Positions 38,673 through 56,400 of a stretch of DNA of 64,000 nt are shown piece after piece; the stretch's first letter is position 1; every line of letters begins with the position of its first letter. The stretch is from Macrostomum hystrix (taxonomy: Eukaryota > Animalia > Platyhelminthes). The position numbers and the translations under genes were made by a program. The stretch covers positions 2,542,001 to 2,606,000 of the forward strand of contig CATNEN010000034.1 in the NCBI GenBank assembly GCA_950097015.1, written 5' to 3'. Below the pieces are notes generated by a model. That model worked only from the letters and a program-made list of their open reading frames with translations. It did not search any database and was not told the DNA's origin.

Positions 38673-41306
38673 TCACTCGCTAAGCCTAGGAGAGGAGATG
38701 CCCCTGTCCTCATGGTTGTAGTCCAAAGCTGAGTGCGGCTCCGCCAACGCGGCTGTCGCGCCTGTCGCATTGTTTGCACCTGCATTGTCATCGCGAGGTG
38801 AATCGCCAAAGTCGGGGCCCATGCGCTGCTCCCAGAACTCGCTGACGCTACGCCGAGCGTCTCGGTTCGTCTCTCGCCATTCGCGCTGCCACTGGCGCAG
38901 CTCCTGCACCTCGGGGTCGCGCCGGACCTACGTTGAGATTAAGATGGGTTGAGAACTCAGCGCGGAAGGGGCTGCTTTACGAAGCAAGAATGGATAAGAG
39001 TGAGACTCTGTGAGTGGGGATCAGACAGCCGCTTCGGGATCAATGAGTGGAATCAAAGTGATGCTGTGGGATCAGTGAGTGGGGATCAGAGAGTGAGGAT
39101 CAGACAGCCATTGCGGGATCAGTGAGTGGGGATCAGAGAGTGAGGATCAGACAGCCGTTGCGGGATCAGTGAGTGGGGATCAGAGAGTGAGGAACAGACA
39201 GCCGTTGCGGGATCAGTGAGTGGGATCACACAGCCGTTGCGGGATCAGTGAGTGGGGATCAGAGAGTGAGGATCAGACAGCCGTTGCGGGATCAGTGAGT
39301 GGGATCACACAGCCGTTGCGGGATCAGTGAGTGGGGATCAGAGAGTGAGGATCAGACAGCCGTTGCGGGATCAGTGAGTGGGATCAGACAGCCGTTGCGG
39401 GATCACACAGCCGTTGCGGGATCAGTGAGTGGGATCACACAGCCGTTGCGGGATCAGTGAGTGGGATCACACAGCCGTTGCGGGATCAGTGAGTGCATGG
39501 AGATCAGAGAGTGGGGATCAGTGAGTGGGATCACACAGCCGTTGCGGGATCAGTGAGTGGGATCACACAGCCGTTGCGGGATCAGTGAGTGGGATCACAC
39601 AGCCGTTGCGGGATCAGTGAGTGGGATCACACAGCCGTTGCGGGATCAGTGAGTGGGATCACACAGCCGTTGCGGGATCAGTGAGTGGGATCACACAGCC
39701 GTTGCGGGATCAGTGAGTGGGATCACACAGCCGTTGCGGGATCAGTGAGTGGAGATCAGAGAGTGGGGGATCAGAGAGTGGGGATCACACAGCCGTTGCG
39801 GGATCAGTGAGTGGAGATCAGACAGCCGTTGCGCGATCAGTGAGAGGGATCAAAGTGATCCTGTGGGATCAGGAATTTAGGATCAGATTGTTGTTGTTAG
39901 ATCAGTGAGTAATTCCAGCTGCTATGACTGCTTCTCAGTTCAGAAGGTTTCGGATAAAGCAGTGCTCAGAGTTGCAAGCAGGAACTGACCAAGAAGCCAC
40001 GCCAGTAGTTCTGAATGATCTGCACCGCCTGCTCATCGTTGAGCAGCACGGACAGCGGCAGGGGCTGGCGCGGGTTCTTGGTCCACTCGTCCCGCACGAA
40101 TGGTATTTCGGCCAGCTGGGTGCCCTGCCGCTCCGGGTGCGCTGGGTTGTTGGCGTACAGGTACTCAGTGAGGAAGTCGCAGGCGTTGAACTTAGTCCGC
40201 TTGCGCTGAAATCAAACATTTGGTCCGTAGCAATTTTGTTTTGCTAAAATAGATTTCCGAAATCGAAAACGAAGACACAAATTCGCACCAAGGTCCCTGA
40301 GCTCGATTCCGAGGCGAGGCCACTTTCAATTGGGGCGCAGCCACGGAGAGAAGGCTTGGGGGCTTGTCGTTCAATTTACGCCCTTGAGCGCAAAACCCCC
40401 AAGGCAAAGTGGAAGTGTACACTGCCTGACGATGAGAAAGTCAGAGCAGATGTACACGCCTCTGTGTGTGCCTGCGTACGGTATGTGGGGTGCGTGTGTC
40501 CTCAGGAGTCAGCGAAATGGGCAGAATTGCCTCCTCACTGGCTTCGGGTCTAGTGTCAGCAAAGGATGTGCCAATGCTCGCGGCCACCCTACAATTATAA
40601 TATAATATATATAAAATCGGTCTACTAAAATGACTCAACTAAAACTAAAATAATTTGTTAGTGTCCTTGTCTTCCAATAAAAATAATTTTAGTTGTCTCC
40701 AAGAGCTGAATACTGGTTAGGTTTAAGGAAATATTAACACTAATTATACGCCCATTAGAAACAAAAAAGCTGATTTATGTTTAGAAACAAAAGACTCACA
40801 TCGAAGCAGCGCTCTTCCCCCGCCATCTGGAGCATGGCCTCCATTGCGGGCAGCAGAGTTGGGAATACATAATGCTCCAGGTATTCTCTTGGCGAGCATT
40901 TTTTCTTGTCAGGCGGCGGGCACGCCTGCTGCTCCCGCGGCAGTGCCGGTTGCTCCGGCCGGTCCAGCAGGGCATAGCCGAACGTCGCCGGATGCGAGAC
41001 GGCCGGATCGAAGTCCAGAGCGCCATCGGTGCAGGGCAGCTGGTGGTGCAGCTTGCCGTAAAACACCGGCGTGTGCTTGCTTGGATCGTAGTCGGACTTG
41101 GCCGTGGAAACGGACTGGGTGTCCTCTTCGGGAAACGGAGGACGCATTGATTTCGCCTCTAGAAATTTTATATTTAATGAGAATTCGTTCTGAGGCTAAG
41201 TAAATGGTAAAGTTTATTTCTCTTTCGTGAAAAATTATGACAGCCAATCACCTTTGCATATTTCTTCCCAGATATTTTTTGGCTGCACATGCGTAATTAG
41301 AGCCAT
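38673..41306 (-). CDS. IQCK: IQ domain-containing protein K (~294 aa)
   Basis: Minus-strand exons 41306-41252, 41158-40800, 40205-39990, 38927-38673 total 885 nt, in frame. Matches IQCK hallmarks: KNIWEEICKE, PPFPE, CSPREYLEHYVFPTLLP..EERCFD|RKRTKFNACDFLTEYLY..NP..IPFV..PRQPLPLS, the IQ motif IQNYWRGFLVR and DPEVQELRQWQ. Confidence 0.93.
39010..39845. repeat. ~32-bp minisatellite (GGGATCAGTGAGTGGGATCACACAGCCGTTGC) in IQCK intron 3
   Basis: Tandem units with longer variants at the left end. Confidence 0.95.
40285..40590 (+). mobile_element. tRNA-headed SINE-like repeat, copy B (longest) in IQCK intron 2
   Basis: GGTCCCTGAGCTCGATTCC (tRNA T-arm-like) followed by the body shared with copies A, C and D. 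Confidence 0.72.
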
Positions 41307-42730
41307 CTCTTCTGAGCGCTGAAAAGAACGAAACATTTTTACCAAGTATACCATTTAACGAAAATATGTTATAAACAGTTTGAAGACTTAGAAGACAGAA
41401 ATCACTAAATCAAGCGCCTCAAAGGCAAGCAAATTTGCTCAAGGTTTAGTAGAGAAAAACTCTTATTTATAATTTCTAAATAAATTATACATGCACAACT
41501 GCATTGACATTTTTGTCACAAAATCGATCTTACTAAGTATATGGTTTTTAAAACAATATAAAAAAATAGAAATGGAAACTTTCATTTCATAAAAAAACGA
41601 AAATCATGTGTCTTAATTGATTTGCCTAACGAAAATAAACATTTATACAGCTATATTATAATTTATTTTTGACTGCATAAAAAGTTCAGGTGTAGAAACT
41701 TTTATATATCGACGTTTGACGTCAGGTAAAACTTGTGCATTACAGGCAATACAATGGGACCGAAAAAACTTGCATTAGTATGATAGTAAATAATAACCAT
41801 CTACGGGTTTTGACTTTCGTGTAAACGTTAAGTGTGCCTTATTCCATAACTAAAATGATTACTTATAAAATAAGTTAAATCTCCTTGGACAAACCAAAAC
41901 CCTGGTTCACTAAGTCTAAAAGAAGCAAAACAGAAAAAAAGTAAAAAATTGTACGATTAGCGCGTTTTCCTTTAAAAATTTGTCTATTAACAAAACGACA
42001 AATTCCCATTTGTTGTAACATACTAAACAGCTGTTTAAATTCAAAATTAGAAGTATCATGTTTTTTCTCTCATTGTTTCAAAAACAAAGTGCAGGAAAAA
42101 TCCGAATGAGGGAGAATATCGGTAGGAAAACATGCATATAACTTGATTTTAAACGAAAAAATGGACTGCAGCAATTATTAAAAACACAAGTAATTGTATT
42201 AGTACACTTTATAGTATTTTTAAACAAAGTACAGAAAATGTGCATCTTTTAAATGCGCAGCTATAGAGTCAAGTAGACGAGTTAAGGTAGACTAGATGTT
42301 TAGAGAATTAGGATTCACAAAATAATTATCCCGATAGTAATGCATTTATAAATCTTGAGTTACCCTTAAATGAAATAAAAAACGAAAAGTGACGTTTTTA
42401 TAACGTCATTCGACCTTCTCTCAATTTGATTAGGCCCTAAAATTTGACTAGGCCTAGTCTATTCTAGAGAGATTTAAATTTATTAAAAATGGGATGAAAT
42501 CTGGATTCTAATGAATCCAAGGCTATACAAATAGTAAATAATAGTGCATTAAGCCAACTTATGTACTCTAAAATAGTTTTTGTTAGGGCTTAGGCTAGTA
42601 GTTTATGCCTTTATTTACATTTTTCCATATCAGTACCAACAGTAGGCCTATAATAAGATTGAATTCAAGTTCTTGTAAATTTCAGATAATATTTTGTAAC
42701 TGAAATTTTAAAGTTCAAATTTCAAAAATT

Positions 42731-43085
42731 TCAAAAACATATTGAGTTGGCGGCTTGCACTCCCTATGGCTAACTGGCTATTCAAATTTGGTTTCTGAGC
42801 CTTAATATACATAACCTCTTGAATGTTCAATTTGTTTTTGGTTACAAGAATAGATCACTTTAAACATATTACAACACTTCTTATAGCAGTAGGAGTTGCA
42901 TGTGAGAATGTGCTCATTGATGGTAGAATTTCTAATCCAATGCTCCTTAATCCTTGTGTACAAGTTTCGCTTAGTTTTATCAATGTTGTAGATATTTTAA
43001 ACTGTAGAACAATGAAATTTATACACAGCACCTACAACAAGTGGTCTAGGAACATGGGACTTCAACCTGCAGACAAACTGAGCAA
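42731..43085 (-). mobile_element. Decayed Penelope-like element fragment (GIY-YIG endonuclease C-terminus)
   Basis: Minus-strand translation RLKSHVPRPLVVGAVYKFHCSTV*NIYNIDKTKRNLYTRIKEHWIRNSTINEHILTCNS..., then after a frameshift LNIQEVMYIKAQKPNLNSQL..RQLNMF*. It aligns with the element at 45960-46140. Confidence 0.8.
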
Positions 43086-45364
43086 TATTTTCCATACTGC
43101 TTTATACTATTTAAATTTATATAGATTAGTTATAATCCCAATATCGTGTCAACACAAGCCATATCAGGCTTGTAATCTCATAAAGGACTATTTGCCAGAG
43201 GGCATTGACATATTATTTGGTGACTCCATAGTTCAGATCATGTAGTAAACTCCAGAATTTTCTAGTGTGTATTAACTTTAGGCTGGTGGTATATACTTTA
43301 AAGGGTTGGTGTGCACCTTGGCATGCATGGTATATATTTGTACATTAAAAAGATATATAAAATATGCTGACTTGTTTATTTGTATTATCAATATCTAATC
43401 TGAATCCTGGCTATAATAAGATAGCAGTAACAGTGTAGAAACTGTAAGAACATACTTTTAAGTACTATATTGATCAAGCAGTTGTTATGTGCTATATATT
43501 ATAATAGAGCATAATATAATATTGTTTTTAGTTAAATACAGCATGGTTAAAACAACTTTGTTATTTTAATTAAAAAAAGATGTCACATTTTTTAAATATT
43601 ACAATTATTATTACAAAACCTGATATGCATGTTTCTGTGCACTAGGCCTACACTAGAATGCAATGAAAAATATCAGTCTAATCTTAACATCTGTTGCAGG
43701 GCTTTCCTCTTATTCAATATTAATCCCACCGCTGTTGACTCAACTAATAGATAATTTTTAAATGGCAATCCTTAAATGGGCCGTTTTAACTTCTCAAATG
43801 GTAGCGTTTATATATGCACGAGCGGTAACTAGGCAACTGTACACGTTTCCAGTCAATTAGGCGTCCCCGAGATTAGAGTTTAGCAGTTTCTCTTCTGTAA
43901 TATTCTTAGTATAATTCCTGAGTATAATTCTGATTATATCTCTCACTGCTATTTCTTCTTAAAATGAATAACACAATGCAATACCTTTGGAAATTTGCTT
44001 TTTAACACACTTAAAAACTCTTTTTACAAACACACTAAAACTCCTTCAATTTCAACTCTTTACACACTTCAAATTATCTCACTTTAAACTCACTCTTTAA
44101 ACTCTTGAAAACACCTTAGAACACTTGTCTTTAACTTCAACTTCTTACAAGAAAACTTCAGACTCTTTAACACTCTGGTTTGTTTGTCCCAACCTTTTAT
44201 TTTTCCTGGTCAAAACTCGCGGCTATTTATACAGAGCAAATTGACATTTTGTTAAAACGATACAAAGTATTATTTACAGGATGCAGTATTAAAACAAAAT
44301 TATTTACATAAGATAAACAAAAATTATTTTTTTTGGCGCATTTTTGATTTTATTTATTTTTACAATTTTTATAATAGAAAGAACGTATTTATAAAGTGGC
44401 TAACTGTGACACATCTAAATCAAATTTTACCCATTTTTTGGCATGCAATCAACATATCTGGACTATGGTGGTGACTCAAGCAAACAAGGACTAGCCAATT
44501 GTGTCTATTCTTCTGACTCCAGAAAACAAGCATATGCACATATACCATATATATGTACACTCACACACATAAGAGTGTATTGGTCCATTGGATCTTCTCA
44601 CTGTTAATGTTTGGCAACATTCACTTTCACTATGCCTTGAATGTTTGCCCTTATGGGCATTAGTTGCACAACAAGCCTCCAAGCTTTCTCTTATCAGCTG
44701 TCCCAAATAAATGTGGCTTGCCGTGGAATCAAGCTAAAAACATCCTTACCTTAGAGTGAATGGCAAATACTTTAGATTGTTCTGCAATAAAACTTGGACT
44801 AACAGGTCAAGGTCTCTGTCAAGACTAGCTAAGCGGTTGCCAGAAAAATCAGGTTTGATGTGTATAATTATATGTATTATATTTTTGTCTTAGGGTTGTT
44901 TTAAATATATTTATACTAATATATATATATATTATTTTCATATTTTAAGAGCTGCATAGAAATGTTGTTTGTGGAACTGCTTGTTAATTAATCAGTCAAA
45001 GTTTGTTATTCAATTTGCCAGTTTAGTAGCTAGAAAGATAAAGTTGTATTGTGTCTTATTCAGCAGTCATCATATTGTCCTATTGTAACATCCCCTCATG
45101 TCACAGTTTGAAGCCCCATCATATTGTATTGAGCTGTTGGACACCGACATCTTACTTTAATATTTATATTTGTGTTAGGAAATTATAGGCTTGGAAATTA
45201 TGATATTTTCTCAATAGATAGACAGGTATCTAGTTATAAATTACATCTGTGGACTAGCAAGGCTGTCACATGTACTTAAGTTTCTATCCAGGCTATGCTG
45301 GTGCTCATATTACAGATAGGTTAACTGAAATTCAAACACTAAGGAATTAATTGACTTGCTCAAT

Positions 45365-45432
45365 GATGCAAAGATTCGAACTTTCGACCCATCAGACAGA
45401 AGTATGAAGCATTAACCCACTGAGCTACAAGC
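45365..45432 (-). pseudogene. Degenerate tRNA-like sequence (tRNA pseudogene or SINE head)
   Basis: The reverse complement GCTTGTAGCTCAGTGGGTTAATGCTTCATACTTCTGTCTGATGGGTCGAAAGTTCGAATC has an A box (TAGCTCAGTGG) and a B box (GTTCGAATC), but its stems are broken. Confidence 0.6.
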
Positions 45433-46066
45433 ATTATTGTTTACATTTAACGACGCGTTTCGCACAACAGTGTGCATCTGTTCACTACTGAGGTTGCTTT
45501 TGACCAGAGGCTCCCGTTCCTTGACCTCGACATTGTTTCAATTGCGGAACCCTCTCCACCAAAGTTTTTTGGAAAAGCTCGTTTACCAATCTCATCCTCA
45601 ACTTAAATGCTTTGTGCCCAAGGCAGTGGAAATCCGGTCTCATCAGATGTCTGCTCCACAGAGCTTTCACTGTCTGCAACACCTGGACTAACTTTGACCA
45701 AGAAGTGAATTTTCTGACCAAAATGGTTACCCTCGTGCATTTATCCACACTCACATTCACAAATTCGTCTCTGAGAAAATTGTCAACAGCCTAGCGCTAA
45801 AACCAATCCCTTCAATCTCAACGAACCAATTCTTGTCCTCCCTTTCTTTGGCTATCTTTCTTAATTCTTCAAAAATAGAATCTGCAAATTATTTCGCAAC
45901 TCTCTTAATTGCAACATCCCCGTCATCTTTCATTCTGCTAAAGTTGGCAACTTTGTTGGTCGGTTGAAGTCACGTGTTCCCTGTGCTCTTCGTGCTGGTG
46001 TGGTTTATCAATTCAACTGCTCTGATGACCAGAGCGTCTCCTACTTGGGGAAGACTAAAAGGCACC

Positions 46067-49000
46067 TGCACACTAGAATCAGGGAGCACTGGCAGAAACT
46101 GTTGGCTATTCAAAACCATCTCTTAGAATGCAACAGTGCACACTAGAATCAGGGAGCACTGGCAGAAACTGTTGGCTATTCAAAACCATCTCTTAGAATG
46201 CAACAGTGCACACTAGAATCAGGGAGCACTGGCTGAAACTGTTGGCTATTCAAAACCATCTCTTAGAATGCAACAGTGCACACTAGAATCAGGGAGCACT
46301 GGCTGAAACCGTCGGCTATTCAAAACCATCTCTTAGAATGCAACAGTGCACACTAGAATCAGGGAGCACTGGCTGAAACTGTTGGCTATTCAAAACCATC
46401 TCTTAGAATGCAACAGTGCACACTAGAATCAGGGAGCACTGGCAGAAACTGTTGGCTATTCAAAACCATCTCTTAGAATGCAACAGTGCACACTAGAATC
46501 AGGGAGCACTGGCTGAAACCGTCGGCTATTCAAAACCATCTCTTAGAATGCAACAGTGCACACTAGAATCAGGGAGCACTGGCTGAAACCGTCGGCTATT
46601 CAAAACCATCTCTTAGAATGCAACAGTGCACACTAGAATCAGGGAGCACTGGCTGAAACCGTCGGCTATTCAAAACCATCTCTTAGAATGCAACAGTGCA
46701 CACTAGAATCAGGGAGCACTGGCTGAAACTGTCGGCTATTCAAAACCATCTCTTAGAATGCAACAGTGCACACTAGAATCAGGGAGCACTGGCTGAAACC
46801 GTCGGCTATTCAAAACCATCTCTTAGAATGCAACAGTGCACACTAGAATCAGGGAGCACTGGCTGAAACCGTCGGCTATTCAAAACCATCTCTTAGAATG
46901 CAACAGTGCACACTATAATCAGGGAGCACTGGCTGAAACCGTCGGCTATTCAAAACCATCTCTTAGAATGCAACAGTGCACACTAGAATCAGGGAGCACT
47001 GGCTGAAACCGTCGGCTATTCAAAACCATCTCTTAGAATGCAACAGTGCACACTAGAATCAGGGAGCACTGGCTGAAACCGTCGGCTATTCAAAACCATC
47101 TCTTAGAATGCAATAGTGCACACTAGAATCAGGGAGCACTGGCTGAAACCGTCGGCTATTCAAAACCATCTCTTAGAATGCAATAGTGCACACTAGAATC
47201 AGGGAGCACTGGCTGAAACCGTCGGCTATTCAAAACCATCTCTTAGAATGCAACAGTGCACACTAGAATCAGGGAGCACTGGCTAAAACCGTCGGCTATT
47301 CAAAACCATCTCTTAGAATGCAACAGTGCACACTAGAATCAGGGAGCACTGGCTGAAACCGTCGGCTATTCAAAACCATCTCTTAGAATGCAACAGTGCA
47401 CACTAGAATCAGGGAGCACTGGCTGAAACCGTCGGCTATTCAAAACCATCTCTTAGAATGCAACAGTGCACACTAGAATCAGGGAGCACTGGCTGAAACC
47501 GTCGGCTATTCAAAACCATCTCTTAGAATGCAATAGTGCACACTAGAATCAGGGAGCACTGGCTAAAACCGTCGGCTATTCAAAACCATCTCTTAGAATG
47601 CAACAGTGCACACTAGAATCAGGGAGCACTGGCTGAAACCGTCGGCTATTCAAAACCATCTCTTAGAATGCAACAGTGCACACTAGAATCAGGGAGCACT
47701 GGCTGAAACCGTCGGCTATTCAAAACCATCTCTTAGAATGCAACAGTGCACACTAGAATCAGGGAGCACTGGCTGAAACTGTTGGCTATTCAAAACCATC
47801 TCTTAGAATGCAACAGTGCACACTAGAATCAGGGAGGCGGAGCACTGGCTGAAACCGTCGGCTATTCAAAACCATCTCTTAGAATGCAACAGTGCACACT
47901 AGAATCAGGGAGCACTGGCTGAAACTGTCGGCTATTCAAAACCATCTCTTAGAATGCAACAGTGCACACTAGAATCAGGGAGCACTGGCTGAAACTGTCG
48001 GCTATTCAAAACCATCTCTTAGAATGCAACAGTGCACACTAGAATCAGGGAGCACTGGCTGAAACTGTCGGCTATTCAAAACCATCTCTTAGAATGCAAC
48101 AGTGCACACTAGAATCAGGGAGCACTGGCAGAAACTGTCGGCTATTCAAAACCATCTCTTAGAATGCAACAGTGCACACTAGAATCAGGGAGCACTGGCT
48201 GAAACCGTCGGCTATTCAAAACCATCTCTTAGAATGCAACAGTGCACACTAGAATCAGGGAGCACTGGCTGAAACCGTCGGCTATTCAAAACCATCTCTT
48301 AGAATGCAACAGTGCACACTAGAATCAGGGAGCACTGGCTGAAACCGTCGGCTATTCAAAACCATCTCTTAGAATGCAACAGTGCACACTAGAATCAGGG
48401 AGCACTGGCTGAAACCGTCGGCTATTCAAAACCATCTCTTAGAATGCAACAGTGCACACTAGAATCAGGGAGCACTGGCTGAAACCGTCGGCTATTCAAA
48501 ACCATCTCTTAGAATGCAACAGTGCACACTAGAATCAGGGAGCACTGGCTGAAACCGTCGGCTATTCAAAACCATCTCTTAGAATGCAACAGTGCACACT
48601 AGAATCAGGGAGCACTGGCTGAAACCGTCGGCTATTCAAAACCATCTCTTAGAATGCAACAGTGCACACTAGAATCAGGGAGCACTGGCTGAAACCGTCG
48701 GCTATTCAAAACCATCTCTTAGAATGCAATAGTGCACACTAGAATCAGGGAGCACTGGCTGAAACCGTCGGCTATTCAAAACCATCTCTTAGAATGCAAC
48801 AGTGCACACTAGAATCAGGGAGCACTGGCTGAAACCGTCGGCTATTCAAAACCATCTCTTAGAATGCAATAGTGCACACTAGAATCAGGGAGCACTGGCT
48901 AAAACCGTCGGCTATTCAAAACCATCTCTTAGAATGCAACAGTGCACACTAGAATCAGGGAGCACTGGCTGAAACCGTCGGCTATTCAAAACCATCTCTT

Positions 49001-51820
49001 AGAATGCAACAGTGCACACTAGAATCAGGGAGCACTGGCTGAAACCGTCGGCTATTCAAAACCATCTCTTAGAATGCAACAGTGCACACTAGAATCAGGG
49101 AGCACTGGCTGAAACCGTTGGCTATTCAAAACCATCTCTTAGAATGCAACAGTGCACACTAGAATCAGGGAGCACTGGCTGAAACTGTCGGCTATTCAAA
49201 ACCATCTCTTAGAATGCAACAGTGCACACTAGAATCAGGGAGCACTGGCTGAAACTGTCGGCTATTCAAAACCATCTCTTAGAATGCAACAGTGCACACT
49301 AGAATCAGGGAGCACTGGCTGAAACCGTCGGCTATTCAAAACCATCTCTTAGAATGCAACAGTGCACACTAGAATCAGGGAGCACTGGCTGAAACCGTCG
49401 GCTATTCAAAACCATCTCTTAGAATGCAATAGTGCACACTAGAATCAGGGAGCACTGGCTGAAACCGTCGGCTATTCAAAACCATCTCTTAGAATGCAAT
49501 AGTGCACACTAGAATCAGGGAGCACTGGCTGAAACCGTCGGCTATTCAAAACCATCTCTTAGAATGCAACAGTGCACACTAGAATCAGGGAGCACTGGCT
49601 GAAACCGTCGGCTATTCAAAACCATCTCTTAGAATGCAACAGTGCACACTAGAATCAGGGAGCACTGGCTGAAACCGTCGGCTATTCAAAACCATCTCTT
49701 AGAATGCAACAGTGCACACTAGAATCAGGGAGCACTGGCTGAAACCGTCGGCTATTCAAAACCATCTCTTAGAATGCAACAGTGCACACTAGAATCAGGG
49801 AGCACTGGCTGAAACCGTCGGCTATTCAAAACCATCTCTTAGAATGCAACAGTGCACACTAGAATCAGGGAGCACTGGCTGAAACCGTCGGCTATTCAAA
49901 ACCATCTCTTAGAATGCAACAGTGCACACTAGAATCAGGGAGCACTGGCTGAAACTGTTGGCTATTCAAAACCATCTCTTAGAATGCAACAGTGCACACT
50001 AGAATCAGGGAGCACTGGCTGAAACCGTCGGCTATTCAAAACCATCTCTTAGAATGCAACAGTGCACACTAGAATCAGGGAGCACTGGCTGAAACCGTCG
50101 GCTATTCAAAACCATCTCTTAGAATGCAACAGTGCACACTAGAATCAGGGAGCACTGGCTGAAACCGTCGGCTATTCAAAACCATCTCTTAGAATGCAAC
50201 AGTGCACACTAGAATCAGGGAGCACTGGCTGAAACCGTCGGCTATTCAAAACCATCTCTTAGAATGCAACAGTGCACACTAGAATCAGGGAGCACTGGCT
50301 AAAACCGTCGGCTATTCAAAACCATCTCTTAGAATGCAACAGTGCACACTAGAATCAGGGAGCACTGGCTGAAACCGTCGGCTATTCAAAACCATCTCTT
50401 AGAATGCAACAGTGCACACTAGAATCAGGGAGCACTGGCTGAAACCGTCGGCTATTCAAAACCATCTCTTAGAATGCAACAGTGCACACTAGAATCAGGG
50501 AGCACTGGCTGAAACCGTCGGCTATTCAAAACCATCTCTTAGAATGCAACAGTGCACACTAGAATCAGGGAGCACTGGCTGAAACCGTCGGCTATTCAAA
50601 ACCATCTCTTAGAATGCAACAGTGCACACTAGAATCAGGGAGCACTGGCTAAAACCGTCGGCTATTCAAAACCATCTCTTAGAATGCAACAGTGCACACT
50701 AGAATCAGGGAGCACTGGCTGAAACCGTCGGCTATTCAAAACCATCTCTTAGAATGCAACAGTGCACACTAGAATCAGGGAGCACTGGCTAAAACCGTCG
50801 GCTATTCAAAACCATCTCTTAGAATGCAACAGTGCACACTAGAATCAGGGAGCACTGGCTGAAACCGTCGGCTATTCAAAACCATCTCTTAGAATGCAAC
50901 AGTGCACACTAGAATCAGGGAGCACTGGCTGAAAACCGTCGGCTATTCAAAACCATCTCTTAGAATGCAACAGTGCACACTAGAATCAGGGAGCACTGGC
51001 TAAAACCGTCGGCTATTCAAAACCATCTCTTAGAATGCAACAGTGCACACTAGAATCAGGGAGCACTGGCTGAAACCGTCGGCTATTCAAAACCATCTCT
51101 TAGAATGCAACAGTGCACACTAGAATCAGGGAGCACTGGCTGAAACCGTCGGCTATTCAAAACCATCTCTTAGAATGCAACAGTGCACACTAGAATCAGG
51201 GAGCACTGGCTGAAACCGTCGGCTATTCAAAACCATCTCTTAGAATGCAACAGTGCACACTAGAATCAGGGAGCACTGGCTGAAACCGTCGGCTATTCAA
51301 AACCATCTCTTAGAATGCAACAGTGCACACTAGAATCAGGGAGCACTGGCTGAAACTGTTGGCTATTCAAAACCATCTCTTAGAATGCAACAGTGCACAC
51401 TAGAATCAGGGAGCACTGGCTGAAACCGTCGGCTATTCAAAACCATCTCTTAGAATGCAACAGTGCACACTAGAATCAGGGAGCACTGGCTGAAACCGTC
51501 GGCTATTCAAAACCATCTCTTAGAATGCAACAGTGCACACTATAATCAGGGAGCACTGGCTGAAACCGTCGGCTATTCAAAACCATCTCTTAGAATGCAA
51601 CAGTGCACACTATAATCAGGGAGCACTGGCTGAAACCGTCGGCTATTCAAAACCATCTCTTAGAATGCAACAGTGCACACTAGAATCAGGGAGCACTGGC
51701 TGAAACCGTCGGCTATTCAAAACCATCTCTTAGAATGCAACAGTGCACACTATAATCAGGGAGCACTGGCTGAAACCGTCGGCTATTCAAAACCATCTCT
51801 TAGAATGCAACAGTGCACAC
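46067..51820 (+). repeat. 70-bp tandem array, 82 copies, derived from the GIY-YIG coding sequence
   Basis: Unit CACACTAGAATCAGGGAGCACTGGCTGAAACCGTCGGCTATTCAAAACCATCTCTTAGAATGCAACAGTG; period 70 (46071, 46141, 46211...). The span equals 82x70 plus a 6-nt insertion (~47836) and a 1-nt insertion (~50933). Bounded by TGCACAC at 46067 and 51814. Confidence 0.97.
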
Positions 51821-52000
51821 GGAGGGGCGGGCTGTACATTCTGTACTGTTGGCTGCAACGCTAACAATCCGTCCTTGGACTTTGCCTCTCTACTTAGGGA
51901 CTATCAAATATGTACTGAAAAAATTAAAATATTGATTACATTTACACCCAAAAAATCTCATATTTATTTACTTCTCTACTCGCTATATTAGTTTAAAATA

Positions 52001-52040
52001 AACCTAAAGATGCACACTGTTGTGCGAAACGCGTCGTTAA
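52001..52040 (+). ncRNA. Minimal type-I hammerhead ribozyme motif of the Penelope-like element, core mutated (CTAAAGA instead of CTGANGA)
   Basis: AAC-CTAAAGA-T-GCACA(CTGT)TGTGC-GAAA-CGCG-TC-GTT: 5-bp stem II, GAAAC, palindromic stem III, GUC cleavage triplet and short stem I AAC/GTT. Confidence 0.7.
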
Positions 52041-53044
52041 ATGTTGATTCTCGCCTTTCTATTTATCTTACTTGCCAAGCGAGCAACTGTACCTGAATTA
52101 TTGTTTACATTTTTTACCTATAATAATAATAATATACTAATAAGTTATTAGTATAGTTATTAGGCCATTTTCTCTTGCCTTTTTTACATTTAATTAGCTC
52201 ATAATTATCTAAGAATAACGTTTTTAATGCGTTCACATCAAAAGTGCCTTTTTTTAGAAACCAGACTATTTTTAGGTTTCGAGTCACTGTTTTTTAACTA
52301 ATGGCTATCTGCTGCAATCATGTGGTTTTATTTCTATAAATGTCCCTCTTCCCCCCTCTCTCTCTCGACTCGCCCTGTCCTTTGACCGGTTGAGATTTGA
52401 GAACACTATACTCATCCACCTTTTAAACAGCGACTGTTCTCAAACCAGGCAAAGTGTTGGCTTCACCGCCTCCTGATCTGCCCAATAAAACAAAGCAAAT
52501 TATTAGTTAAGTGCACCGAGCTGGGTGCACTCCAGTGCTGCTCTGCCGTCTCCATTGGTCCCTCTTCTCTCAATCAATTTTACTACTCTTAACTCCTTAT
52601 CCTTCCAAGTCCATTCCAAGCCACACTTTGACTGTTGGCCTCCCCTGGCACTTTGCGCTTTAGTGCTTGCCCTGACTCACTCAAATATGCCCTCTGAGTC
52701 CAACTTTGCAGTTCTCTCTCTCTCTCACTGCCTGTCAGAAACAACTTGTGCACTTTGATCTAGGAATGGGGCAGGTGTAGTGACTTTGGTCAAGTCTCTG
52801 TCAATATATTTCAGAAGATATCTATATATTAGATTAGACAGTCTCCTTAATTTGCTATTTCGTCTTCTTAATTTTGTGGTGAATAGTATAATTTAGTTTT
52901 TTAGACATTTCTGGTAAGTTATTGTTTGAAGGCAACTTGATTGTGCCACATTTCTCCAGATACTAATGTGTTAAATTAGATACGAATTGATATCGTCATA
53001 GCCTCAGAATACCGGAGCCCCAAATCCTCATGATGCCTGGTCAT

Positions 53045-53412
53045 CCAGATTCTCAGTTTGAGTCGCCACCTTTCCCCGATCCTCAGTTTGAGTCGCCACC
53101 TTTCTCAGATCCTCAGTTTGAGTCGCCGTCTTTCACAGATCCTCAGTTTGAGTCGCCACCTTTCTCCGATCCTCAGTTTGAGTCGCCACCTTTCTCCGAT
53201 CCTCAGTTTGAGTCGCCATCTTTCACAGATCCTCAGTTTGAGTCGCCACCTTTCTCCGATCCTCAGTTTGAGTCGCCATCTTTCACAGATCCTCAGTTTG
53301 AGTCGCCACCTTTCACAGATCCTCAGTTTGAGTCGCCACCTTTCACAGATCCTCAGTTTGAGTCGCCACCTTTCACAGATCCTCAGTTTGAGTCGCCATC
53401 TTTCACAGATGT
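53045..53412. repeat. 30-bp minisatellite (GATCCTCAGTTTGAGTCGCCACCTTTCACA) just upstream of the AdipoR first coding exon
   Basis: About 12 copies ending about 60 nt before the acceptor TTGCCAG (53474). Confidence 0.95.
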
Positions 53413-53484
53413 GCAATTTGGGTCATAAGTTAAAAAGGCCCTGTCCCATTGCAGCAATCCTCACCTGTTGCCAGCTGCACGCCA

Positions 53485-56400
53485 ATGGAGCCGGCTCAGG
53501 TACTAATCTCCGGCTTGGCCTCGCGCGACTCCGACGACCCGTTACAGTCGAATTCGACTTCAGCCGTCGCCGCTGCCAGCCAGCCGCTGCTAGGCAGCCG
53601 GTTGTCATCGGCGCGTCTTAGCCCGCAGAATCGAAGCAACCGTTCCAGATCGGACGGCACAGCCTTCATCCAGACGGAGGATGCCTGCGATTTTAGCGCC
53701 TGCGTCGCCACTACGGCTGCGTCGGCGGCTGCGCTGGCTTCAGCGCCTGTGGCTGCGGCCGCCGCCGCTGCTGCTGGGGGCGAGTCGCTGGACAATGCCA
53801 ATATCATTGGCGAGGCCTCTAGCGGCGTCACTAAGAGGCGCGGGCAGCATCGCAAGGTTAGAATGTTAATAACAATATCAATAATACTTGCAGGAGCGCT
53901 GCGGGCACATGTACATTTGATGTCAGTGGACCCGCAGCCAGCCAGGAGGCAATTCTGCCCATTTCGCTGACTCCCGAGCACACACGCACACAGATACTGT
54001 ACGCAGGCACACGCTCTTCAGGCAGTACTCTTACACTGTGCCTTGGAGTTTGGCTCTCAAGGACTTCAATTCCATGGCAAGCCCCCAAGCCTTTTCTCCG
54101 CGGCTGCGCCCCAAATGAATGAGGCAAACGTATTAGACCGCTCTGCTGCTCACCCCTCGTGGTTAGAATGTTTGATTTAGTGTTTTGAATCCCCATTACA
54201 ATCTATGAAGCATTATCCAACTGTCATTGCTTTACTTGTGAAACACCTGCATCAAAAATCCGCGCAGAACTCCGACCCGCTGCCGCACAAGCCGTCTGAC
54301 TTGACGCTGCTTCAACAATTCGATGAATTGGCCACCCGCGCCAAGGACAGCGCCGAGCAGTTTATGCACCACGTTTGGACTCACGGCTGGCGCCTGACGC
54401 CCCACTGCCGCCTGCCCGACTGGCTGAAGGACAACGACTTTCTACTGCAAGGCCACCGGCCACAGCTCAACACTTTCACCGCCTGCTTCAAGAGCATCTT
54501 TCGCATTCACACCGAGACTGGAAACATTTGGACTCACATGCTGGGTGAGCACTCAGATCTGTTCATTTGCTCTATAATGAAGGTCGTGGGTTCGTATCTT
54601 TGCTATTCTGCAACGAAAAGTATCTATTAAACAAAGAAGCGTTAAAAAATTGGGGATCAAAGCCTCGAATATGCGGAATAAGAAAGTGAAACTCGGAGGC
54701 CAATGGTTCGAATCTGGAACTCGGAGGCCCATGGTTCGAACCTAGACTCGGAGGCCCTGGGTTCGAATCTGGAACTCGGAGGCCCAGTGTTTAAATATAT
54801 GAAACTCGGAGGCCCAGGGTTCAAATCTGGAACTCGGAGGCCCAAGGTTCGAATCTGGAACTCGGAGGCCCATGGTTCGAACCTAAACTCGGAGACCCAT
54901 GGTTCGAATCTGGAACTCAGAGGCCCATGGTTCGAACCTAAACTCGGAGACCCATGGTTCGAATCTGGAACTCAGAGGCCCATGGTTCGAATCTGGAACT
55001 CGGAGGCCCATGGTTTGAACCTAGACTCGGAGGTCCTGGGTTCGAATCTGGAACTCGGAGGCCTAGTGTTTGAATATGGAACTCAGAGGCCCATGGTTTG
55101 AATCTGGAACTCGGAGGCCCAGTGTTTAAATATATGAAACTCGGAGGCCCAGGGTTCAAATCTGGAACTCGGAGGCCCAAGGTTCGAATCTGGAACTCGG
55201 AGGCCCATGGTTCGAACCTAAACTCGGAGACCCATGGTTCGAATCTGGAACTCAGAGGCCCATGGTTCGAACCTAAACTCGGAGACCCATGGTTCGAATC
55301 TGGAACTCAGAGGCCCATGGTTCGAATCTGGAACTCGGAGGCCCATGGTTTGAACCTAGACTCGGAGGTCCTGGGTTCGAATCTGGAACTCGGAGGCCCA
55401 TGGTTTGAACCTAGACTCGGAGGTCCTGGGTTCGAATCTGGAACTCTAAGGCCTAGTGTTTGAATATGGAACTCAGAGGCCCATGGTTCGAATCTGGAAC
55501 TCGGAGGCCCAGTGTTTGAATATGGAACTCAGAGGCCCATGGTTCGAATCTGGAACTCGGAGGCCCATGGTTTGAACCTAGACTCGGAGGTCCTGTGTTC
55601 GAATCTGGAACTCTAAGGCCTAGTGTTTGAATATGGAACTCAGAGGCCCATGGTTCGAATCTGGAACTCGGAGGCCCAGTGTTTGAATATGGAACTCAGA
55701 GGCCCATGGTTCGAATCTGGAACTCGGAGACCCATGGTTCGAATCTAAAATTTCGTGGGGATTCGAACTCTAACAGTTAGTTTACACTAATTAAGAATAT
55801 GGAGTATATTAAAATTCAACGGTCGTGAGTTGAACTCGCAGAGGAAGATTTTATTAATCTTGTGGAACCCCAGTTGTATAGTATTTCTTTCAATAATATA
55901 ATCAAGTTTTCCCTATTTCTTATTGACCAGGCTGCATCGCCTTCACAGGCATAGCCGTCTACTTTCTAACTAGGCCCTCAATCGAAGTGCAATGGCAGGA
56001 GAAGCTTGTGTTCGCCGCATTCTTTCTCGGCGCTGTGCTCTGCATGGGCTTCTCATTCATCTTCCACACCGTCTACTGCCACTCCGAGCGAGTTGGCCGA
56101 CTATTTAATAAGTGAGTAAATCACATTCTGAAGGCATTCTACTATGAGTAGTCAGATGTTTAATTTTATTTGTTTCGCTTTCTAGGCTGGACTACTGCGG
56201 CATTGCCCTCCTAACTATGGGTAGCTTCGTGCCCTGGCTATACTACTCATTCTATTGCCAGCTTTCGCCTAAAATTATCTACCTGACACTGATCAGCATC
56301 CTGGGCACGGCTGCGATTGTGGTGTCCATGTTTGACGCATTCGCTGCACCGAAATACAGGCCGCTGAGAGCTGGTGAGAGCTGAGAGCTGATTTATTGAT

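Follow-up and report, generated by a model that had tools for sequence, protein, structure and literature searches.

A single-locus tandem array derived from nuclease-coding sequence of a Penelope-like element in Macrostomum hystrix

In the window analyzed here (the whole 64,000-nt stretch of the Macrostomum hystrix assembly), a 70-bp piece of the GIY-YIG nuclease gene of a Penelope-like element (PLE) is repeated head to tail in 82 units. The element copy is dead, and one border of the array is shaped by a deletion. We consider it probable that a host tandem duplication arose within this copy after insertion and that stepwise unequal exchange then enlarged the duplicate. The outcome is a single-locus, transposon-derived array, an ordinary if clean instance of a known process.

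Tandem Repeats Finder (TRF) reports a single array at 46067-51820 with a period of 70, 82.1 copies, 98% matches and a score of 11123. Unit boundaries were set by splitting the array at the anchor TGCACAC, which yields 82 units in the assembly: 80 of 70 bp, one of 76 bp (47817-47892) that owes its length to a 6-nt insertion, and one of 71 bp (50903-50973) with one extra A, followed by a 7-nt partial unit, TGCACAC, that closes the array at 51814-51820. The earlier note's count of 82 highly homogeneous 70-bp copies is thus correct in number and homogeneity, while two units depart from the stated length. Its figure of about 86% of the insertion agrees with ours (5,754 of 6,648 bp, or 86.6%, the insertion being taken between its direct repeats). 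The array sits within one PLE insertion (45449-52096, 6,648 bp), whose features are as follows.

45433..45448, + strand: left copy of a 16-bp direct repeat, ATTATTGTTTACATTT, a candidate target-site duplication with an exact second copy at 52097-52112
45443..45479, - strand: 37-nt inverted fragment of the element 3' region at the 5' junction, the exact reverse complement of 52008-52044
45480..46066, + strand: 5'-truncated PLE body (C-terminal reverse transcriptase tail, linker and start of the GIY-YIG domain), with 92-93% DNA identity to other copies
46067..51820, + strand: tandem array of 82 units plus the partial TGCACAC, from TRF, the anchor split and the variant map
51820..51821, + strand: deletion junction at which 164 nt of other copies are missing, by comparison with those copies
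51821..52096, + strand: element 3' untranslated region, by comparison with other copies
52063-52096, + strand: optional terminal extension of about 34 nt, present in some copies only, from the two 3'-end classes in the family
52097..52112, + strand: right copy of the 16-bp direct repeat, an exact match to the left copy

The last 6 nt of the left direct repeat overlap the inverted fragment. Complex tandem and inverted structures are known at PLE insertions (PMC8557442), as is an optional 30-40-bp "tail" at PLE termini (PMC8557442, PMC11167929). An adiponectin-receptor-like exon lies 2.4 kb beyond the array on its downstream side.

The family is best read in L022, a paralogous copy with an intact 316-aa ORF whose residues 217-298 match Pfam GIY-YIG at 27.5 bits (cut-off 22.6). 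Directly upstream, in a different frame, lies an RVT_1-like fragment under the Pfam cut-off (E = 5e-4). The window copy aligns with residues 32-263 of the L022 ORF, and the closest clusters in the ESM Atlas consist of animal transposon fragments with HTH_animal and GIY-YIG (plus RVT_1). Read in two frames, L022 appears to have the canonical PLE order, with the GIY-YIG nuclease placed C-terminally after a reverse transcriptase. The family also resembles PLEs in its often 5'-truncated copies, in the inverted fragments next to them and in an optional 30-40-bp terminal extension (PMC8557442, PMC11167929): family copies begin at many different positions, copy L034 also carries an inverted 3' fragment at its 5' junction similar to that of the window copy, and 3' ends fall into two classes about 30 nt apart (query position 240-252 or 268-276). 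A PDB sequence search with the element ORF gave zero matches, and the neighbouring ORFs and a second GIY-YIG-like fragment gave zero Pfam matches.

The 70-bp unit translates to HTRIREHWLKPSAIQNHLLECNS(A) and aligns with residues 240-263 of the L022 ORF, inside its GIY-YIG match, which agrees with the earlier view that a segment of a retroelement GIY-YIG gene was amplified on the spot. The PLE body upstream of the array is decayed, with at least three frameshifts and an in-frame stop (tblastn against the intact L022 ORF, three frame changes). A TAG at 46144-46146 does end the reading frame at the first unit junction, but the proposal that this stop killed the nuclease cannot be maintained: since the copy is cut short at its 5' end and bears three frameshifts and a stop upstream, it was already non-functional and the array killed nothing. 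Judged from its sequence, the copy was apparently dead on arrival, before any effect of the array. The array contains no ORF longer than 63 aa on either strand; stops are present in all frames, and it is therefore non-coding.

Comparison with other members of the family establishes the ancestral state. About 45 further family copies are found in the assembly, each holding the 70-bp segment once and none a dimer of it. A search of the 220-Mb assembly with the 70-mer returned 21 single-unit matches outside the window, all inside element copies, and no second array anywhere in the assembly; the 70-mer is thus arrayed at this locus only. TRF over the approximately 45 copies detected an array on element sequence in only the window copy and copy L026. 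By plain counts of differences, the window copy is also the most diverged among ten compared (3.1% private differences vs. 0-2.4%). A 70-mer arrayed at one locus, in the most diverged of ten copies, does not fit the earlier portrayal of a transposon-to-satellite transition "caught in the act" or of a new satellite family. The states C65 and C68 distinguish the unit from close family copies; both are synonymous and recur in the divergent copy L037, so these are subfamily states rather than post-insertion changes. Using these "private" states to date the amplification, or to place it before or after insertion, was therefore rejected.

On its right side the array ends at a deletion. After the unit, all other copies read CTGCTCC rather than TGCACAC, and between the unit and GGAGGGG they carry the 164 nt missing here, which hold the last 53 GIY-YIG codons and the stop. 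The right TGCACAC is therefore a partial 83rd unit left at the deletion. The heptamer does occur at both ends of the array, as the earlier note observed, but it is not an ancestral 7-bp microhomology, and ancestral 7-bp direct repeats around the unit were rejected because CTGCTCC follows the unit in other copies. The junction sequence is found at no second place in the assembly, and a subfamily already bearing the deletion was rejected on this ground.

Variants within the array are patterned, and those named previously all exist. The edge haplotype A28/T34/T37 occupies units 1, 2 and 6; T10 is found in units 13, 79, 80 and 82, and T68 and A29 are each present in 7 units. The majority-unit state at positions 28, 34 and 37 is shared by every other family copy, divergent ones included, so the edge haplotype is derived and the earlier preference for the majority unit over the edge variant is borne out. 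Two of the three left-edge changes are CpG-to-TpG. The 46 variant cells fall on only 6 sites, where 33.9 are expected under independent mutation, and six or fewer variant sites were reached in none of 100,000 simulations of independent mutation. All four gametes are seen at site pairs 28/37 and 34/37, and adjacent identical minority units occur 7 times vs. 1.86 by chance (p = 0.0015). Variants that are shared, clustered and recombined indicate that units were duplicated and exchanged over time, rather than copied all at once and left to drift. Unequal exchange, one part of the mechanism put forward in the earlier note, is thereby upheld; its other parts, a start at microhomology and copying by the element's own reverse transcriptase or a rolling circle, are not.

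The same landmarks bear on whether the array could be an assembly artefact, a short repeat of far fewer true units inflated by the assembler. Assembly errors are classically met in long uniform arrays, but the two indel units, the six variant sites and the gradient at the left edge form an ordered series unlike pure inflation. The assembly holds 220 Mb in 42 contigs, which implies long reads, and these usually span 5.75 kb. We consider an artefact very unlikely. Stepwise turnover also weighs against extrachromosomal amplification, by which a circle excised from the locus would have been replicated as a rolling circle and returned to the same place. DNA stiffness makes a 70-bp double-stranded circle physically unfavourable, and a circle would be unlikely to re-enter its source exactly in register. 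Among the routes proposed for tandem transposon arrays is rolling-circle replication (PMC5932611), and the array is much larger than its neighbours, but such a passage through a circle seems to us highly improbable.

Tandem arrays are common in this part of the genome. In the window, 33 arrays account for 37% of the sequence, compared with 9.4% of 125 kb in the flanks of 38 other family copies, which served as the comparison for repeat density. Other arrays have main window periods of 11-47 bp and lengths of at most 1.7 kb, and the 5.75-kb array is more than three times larger than any other of 84 arrays in about 190 kb. The array in L026, of the same family, has a 95-bp unit that joins 52 nt of the element to 43 nt that are absent from all other sampled loci and that we take for flank. 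As its unit spans both element and presumed flank, the L026 array would be a host-side, post-insertion event. From L026, the array density of the window and the flanks of other copies, a host array-forming process is demonstrably at work in this genome.

By these observations, the history we favor would run as follows. A 5'-truncated PLE inserted with a candidate 10-16-bp target duplication and an inverted 3' piece at its 5' junction, non-functional from the start. After insertion, the tandem-duplication machinery of the host would have doubled a 70-bp internal segment, by replication slippage or error-prone break repair, and the duplicate could then have allowed sister chromatids or homologues to exchange out of register, to slip and to convert one another. 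In this way the array would have reached 82 units, gaining one or several at each step, with its interior kept uniform, while the left edge, less involved in exchange, would have drifted, mainly by CpG-to-TpG change. A deletion that starts at unit position 8 and takes in the final 164 nt of the nuclease ORF produced the present right border, whether in a separate event or together with the rearrangement that founded the array. The standard account of how transposons give rise to satellites has two stages, first a small tandem and then unequal exchange (PMC5932611, PMC12692304). The unit-to-unit junction is without visible microhomology, and a founding duplication of this kind counts against our explanation, as does the exceptional size of the array; the coincidence of the array border with the deletion would also fit a single complex event. 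Such an event could include reverse-transcriptase template switching during insertion. Two further routes were rejected: hairpin-driven slippage, as a dimer of the unit is no more stably folded than shuffled sequence (z = -0.38), and head-to-tail multiple insertion of the pseudo-LTR type, as the unit is internal and without the element 3' end.

An origin during retrotransposition would instead have the PLE reverse transcriptase, acting in trans, make the repeats and the 164-nt deletion together by repeated template switching or from a small circular template, with later exchange reshuffling the units. This demands either 82 jumps between the same two homology-free positions or a 70-nt circle, neither of which, to our knowledge, is known for PLEs. 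In its favor, template jumps can leave a homology-free deletion junction like the one at the right border, complex tandem and inverted PLE insertions are known (PMC8557442), and tandem hammerhead PLE derivatives are thought to spread by rolling-circle copying (bioRxiv 10.64898/2026.07.22.740005). However, the unit is internal coding sequence and does not include the element 3' end, from which reverse transcription begins (PMC11167929), and an Rfam search of 41000-54000 gave no hammerhead or other match at E <= 1. For PLE identity, where a hammerhead motif in the pseudo-LTR would be the feature to look for, this absence carries little weight, the window copy being 5'-truncated and without a pseudo-LTR. 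In addition, some 45 other copies are without even a dimer of the segment, and the L026 array, which includes presumed flank, would have arisen after insertion. Nothing at the locus positively indicates copying by the element's own reverse transcriptase or by a rolling circle, and we regard this origin as unlikely.

Post-insertion duplication with unequal exchange, our preferred reading, places the array among known kinds of repeat. Minisatellites have a monomer of roughly 10-100 bp and form arrays of about 0.5 to tens of kb at one locus, and with its 70-bp monomer, 5,754 bp and single locus the array is a minisatellite. It resembles satellites in its head-to-tail non-coding monomer and in its concerted evolution, seen as shared and clustered variants, but satellites are highly repeated, with long arrays that usually occupy several loci or heterochromatin, and a single 5.75-kb locus falls short of this. 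Transposon-derived satellites include Tetris/TIR-220 of Drosophila virilis (PMC4079207) and the internal-to-internal transposon tandems of D. melanogaster (PMC5932611), and Penelope elements are listed among known satellite sources (PMC12692304). Like these, the array has a mobile-element piece as its head-to-tail monomer, a uniform interior, diverged edges and variant exchange. Unlike these, its monomer is nuclease-domain coding sequence rather than a pre-existing internal or terminal repeat, and it is a single-locus array of only 5.75 kb that has not spread. In common with the ordinary minisatellites of this genome, and with L026, it amplifies a short local sequence in place with the source still readable, but its 70-bp period and 5.75-kb length are the largest among the 84 arrays scanned. 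Non-LTR retrozymes, which are tandem hammerhead repeats from PLE pseudo-LTRs (bioRxiv 10.64898/2026.07.22.740005), are similar in being tandem repeats of PLE-derived sequence; in contrast, the present array has a coding-region unit in place of a pseudo-LTR, no hammerhead by Rfam, one locus and no sign of mobility, and a hammerhead or retrozyme nature, which calls for a self-cleaving hammerhead per tandem unit and for dispersed copies, was rejected on the Rfam result in 41000-54000 and the single locus.

The locus reveals no new mechanism, and no role is seen for the element's own enzymes. It provides a well-resolved natural example of a protein-coding piece of a transposon becoming a tandem array, in which one can read together where the sequence came from, where the insertion is bounded, which state is ancestral (by comparison with about 45 sister copies) and how variants are laid out inside the array. 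Minisatellites are unusually abundant in this flatworm genome, and the locus is a convenient one at which to measure the turnover of arrays.

Both arrays in this family, of 70 bp here and 95 bp in L026, start their periodicity exactly at TGCACAC, and the inverted 5'-junction fragment ends 3 nt from a TGCACAC. The heptamer is not a general array-edge motif, being at an edge in none of 82 other arrays. There is a slim chance that it is a preferred start of tandem duplication in this PLE family, and it could be a recurrent nick site (for example, of the family GIY-YIG nuclease) or a polymerase stall site. In that case, the dead copies of the family would have their repeat arrays seeded by its active members.

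A single array at window positions 46067-51820 was reported by Tandem Repeats Finder (period 70, 82.1 copies, 98% matches, score 11123). Cutting the sequence at each TGCACAC divides it into 82 units, 80 of which are 70 bp long, and variation among the 70-bp units is confined to six positions (46 variant cells in total). The frame entering the array from the left hits a TAG at 46144-46146, the first unit junction. The earlier note's description of the array, its named variants and this stop thus agrees with our analysis, except that two units (76 and 71 bp) depart from the common size. The internal landmarks of the array are ordered, which argues against an assembly artefact. Judged by its size and distribution, the array is a large minisatellite and not a satellite family.

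Landmarks of the array and its insertion
45433-45448 and 52097-52112: 16-bp direct repeat ATTATTGTTTACATTT, exact copies
45443-45479: 37-nt inverted copy of 52008-52044
47817: 76-bp unit, with a 6-nt insertion placed after GGGAG
50903: 71-bp unit, with a single additional A
51814-51820: terminal TGCACAC, closing the array after unit 82

The sequence left of the array (45480-46066) recurs at 92-93% identity in many parts of the same 220-Mb assembly. In L022, a long copy of this family, a 316-aa open frame matches Pfam GIY-YIG (27.5 bits, where the cut-off is 22.6), and a reverse-transcriptase-like fragment lies directly ahead of it, but in a different frame. The closest ESM Atlas clusters to this frame hold fragments of animal transposons with HTH_animal, GIY-YIG and RVT_1. 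Copies of the family have many and various start points, indicating 5' truncation, and two classes of 3' end about 30 nt apart; at some 5' junctions, short stretches of the 3' region are present in inverted orientation. As 5' truncation, two 3'-end classes and inverted pieces are published hallmarks of Penelope-like elements (PLEs) (PMC8557442; PMC11167929), these features and the L022 domain matches point to a PLE as the carrier of the array. L022 is also adjoined by fragments of an LTR-retrotransposon-type reverse transcriptase with a YVDDIAVFSE motif (L022:1-1090; G000:C14:120599-121688), the whole being a nested transposon cluster. In the window, the 16-bp direct repeat borders an insertion of 6,648 bp (45449-52096), of which the array makes up 86.6%, as had been estimated from the sequence alone. 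Stripped of the extra units, the insert would measure ~960 bp; it holds the end of the reverse transcriptase region, a linker, a portion of the nuclease domain and the 3' untranslated region.

The right border of the array is explained by comparison with other family members. All other copies examined have the 70-bp segment once, followed by CTGCTCC, with 164 nt altogether up to GGAGGGG; these 164 nt code for the nuclease's 53 C-terminal residues (CSSCKPEERFKVIDQCSFDSKLQILEALYIKAHSPNFNTQLQHSGAGHVLRVF) and the stop. The window copy lacks these 164 nt, and the last TGCACAC of the array directly adjoins GGAGGGG; with this junction at its centre, a 100-nt probe had no other full-length match in the assembly. 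The loss of the 164 nt and the CTGCTCC of the other copies show that the terminal TGCACAC is a partial unit, the start of an 83rd of which the deletion left 7 nt. In the ancestor TGCACAC did not bound the unit at both of its ends, and the flanking microhomology proposed in the earlier note falls away. The unit-to-unit junction (AACAG/TGCACAC) likewise has no homology with the original flanks on the left (GGCACC/TGCACAC) or right (AATAG/CTGCTCC).

Alignment of the window copy against the intact open frame of L022 revealed three frame changes and an in-frame stop (GYLS*FF versus GYPSQFF in L022) ahead of the array, and almost the whole reverse transcriptase is missing. This copy was therefore dead already: the TAG where the first two units meet does exist, but it inactivated nothing, contrary to the suggestion that it killed the nuclease.

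A genome search with a 210-nt probe from the array returned 37 overlapping matches inside the window's own array and 21 elsewhere, each of the latter one single 56-71-nt unit within an element copy. The segment is thus amplified at this locus alone, and the proposed source of a new satellite family is not borne out. Tandem Repeats Finder, run on 48 fetched loci (~45 distinct copies), found just one other copy with an array over element sequence. The array is no normal part of the PLE family, and it has not spread.

Positions 28, 34 and 37 of the unit are T, C and C in all other copies, divergent ones included, just as in the majority unit. The haplotype of the left edge (A, T and T, in units 1, 2 and 6) is therefore derived, the majority variant being the more original as previously supposed; T34 and T37 of the edge haplotype are CpG-to-TpG changes. 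The units also carry C65 and C68 where close copies have T and T, both differences being synonymous (TGC/TGT, AAC/AAT). These were ruled out as a date marker for the amplification since the divergent copy L037 has both, making them subfamily states.

The 46 variant cells occupy 6 sites against 33.9 expected under independent mutation, and simulation of such mutation gave 6 or fewer sites in 0 of 100,000 runs. All four allele combinations are present at site pairs 28/37 and 34/37, and identical minority units are adjacent in 7 cases, where 1.86 would be expected (p = 0.0015). These patterns indicate repeated duplication, exchange and conversion, upholding the earlier view that unequal exchange shaped the array; a single burst followed by drift does not account for the shared, recombined and clustered variants. 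Private differences are highest in the window copy among ten copies compared (3.1% versus 0-2.4%), part of which may stem from subfamily ancestry. Within 45480-46136, 9/36 CpG positions are changed versus 14/365 others (Fisher p = 5e-5), a CpG-specific decay that may point to methylation of cytosines, or to hypermutable CpG sites, in the germline of this flatworm. Units differ pairwise by 1.5% on average, so that the array interior is more uniform than the copy's age predicts. This fits a later origin or ongoing homogenisation, and does not demonstrate a transition "caught in the act".

The window holds 33 separate tandem arrays that together take up 37% of it (31% if the 70-bp array is left out); the others have main periods of 11-47 bp and sizes of 0.03-1.7 kb. 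The flanks of 38 other copies (125 kb) contain 51 arrays, or 9.4%, and simple and tandem repeats are reported to form 15% of the M. lignano genome (PMC5730564). The window (1-64000) is exceptionally minisatellite-rich. A same-family copy at L026:2264-2928 (G000:C24:6169920-6170584) bears an array with a 95-bp period and 7.0 units. Each of these comprises the element's last 52 nt and 43 nt absent elsewhere in the sampled loci, which we take for flank. Joining element end to presumed flank, the L026 array formed after insertion, through a host process. In both arrays of the family periodicity begins exactly at TGCACAC, which is found at the edge of 0/82 other arrays scanned; with n=2, the common start may be chance.

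The best-supported account is the standard two-stage model of small tandem duplication followed by growth through unequal exchange (PMC5932611), operating here on an element copy that was already dead, within a genome full of such arrays. A small tandem duplication would have arisen inside the dead PLE copy and unequal exchange would have expanded it, the right border being set by the deletion. The anatomy, the restriction to one locus, the deletion, and the direction and sharing of the variants are observed; how the first duplication came about at the molecular level, and in what sequence the steps followed, is inferred. Reverse transcription by the element itself, raised in the earlier note, is an unlikely alternative with no positive support: no ribozyme was detected, the unit has neither a special fold nor a 3' end, and none of the other copies contains the segment as a dimer.

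Satellites and minisatellites derived from transposon parts are already well documented, and this array is one more case: a review explicitly places Penelope elements among their sources (PMC12692304), and Tetris is another example (PMC4079207). Like these, the array takes its monomer from part of a transposon. Unlike them, its monomer is nuclease coding sequence, and it is confined to a single locus and unusually long for its genome.

Neighbouring features in the window
42802-42963 (-): GIY-YIG-like fragment (MYTRIKEHWIRNSTINEHILTCNS...), the second in the window and unrelated to the first, within AT-rich sequence (31% GC)
53046-53410 (+): 30-bp array of 12 units, forming an open, putatively coding frame of DPQFESPPF-type decapeptides
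54205-54627 (+): open frame that over its residues 61-122 matches adiponectin receptors 1 and 2 of human (PDB 5lx9, E = 5e-26)

The fragment at 42802-42963 has no Pfam match and is probably what is left of another Penelope-like family. The frame at 54205-54627, 2.4 kb downstream of the array, is an exon of an adiponectin-receptor-like gene, only a distant homologue of the human protein. The 30-bp array sits directly between the PLE and this exon.
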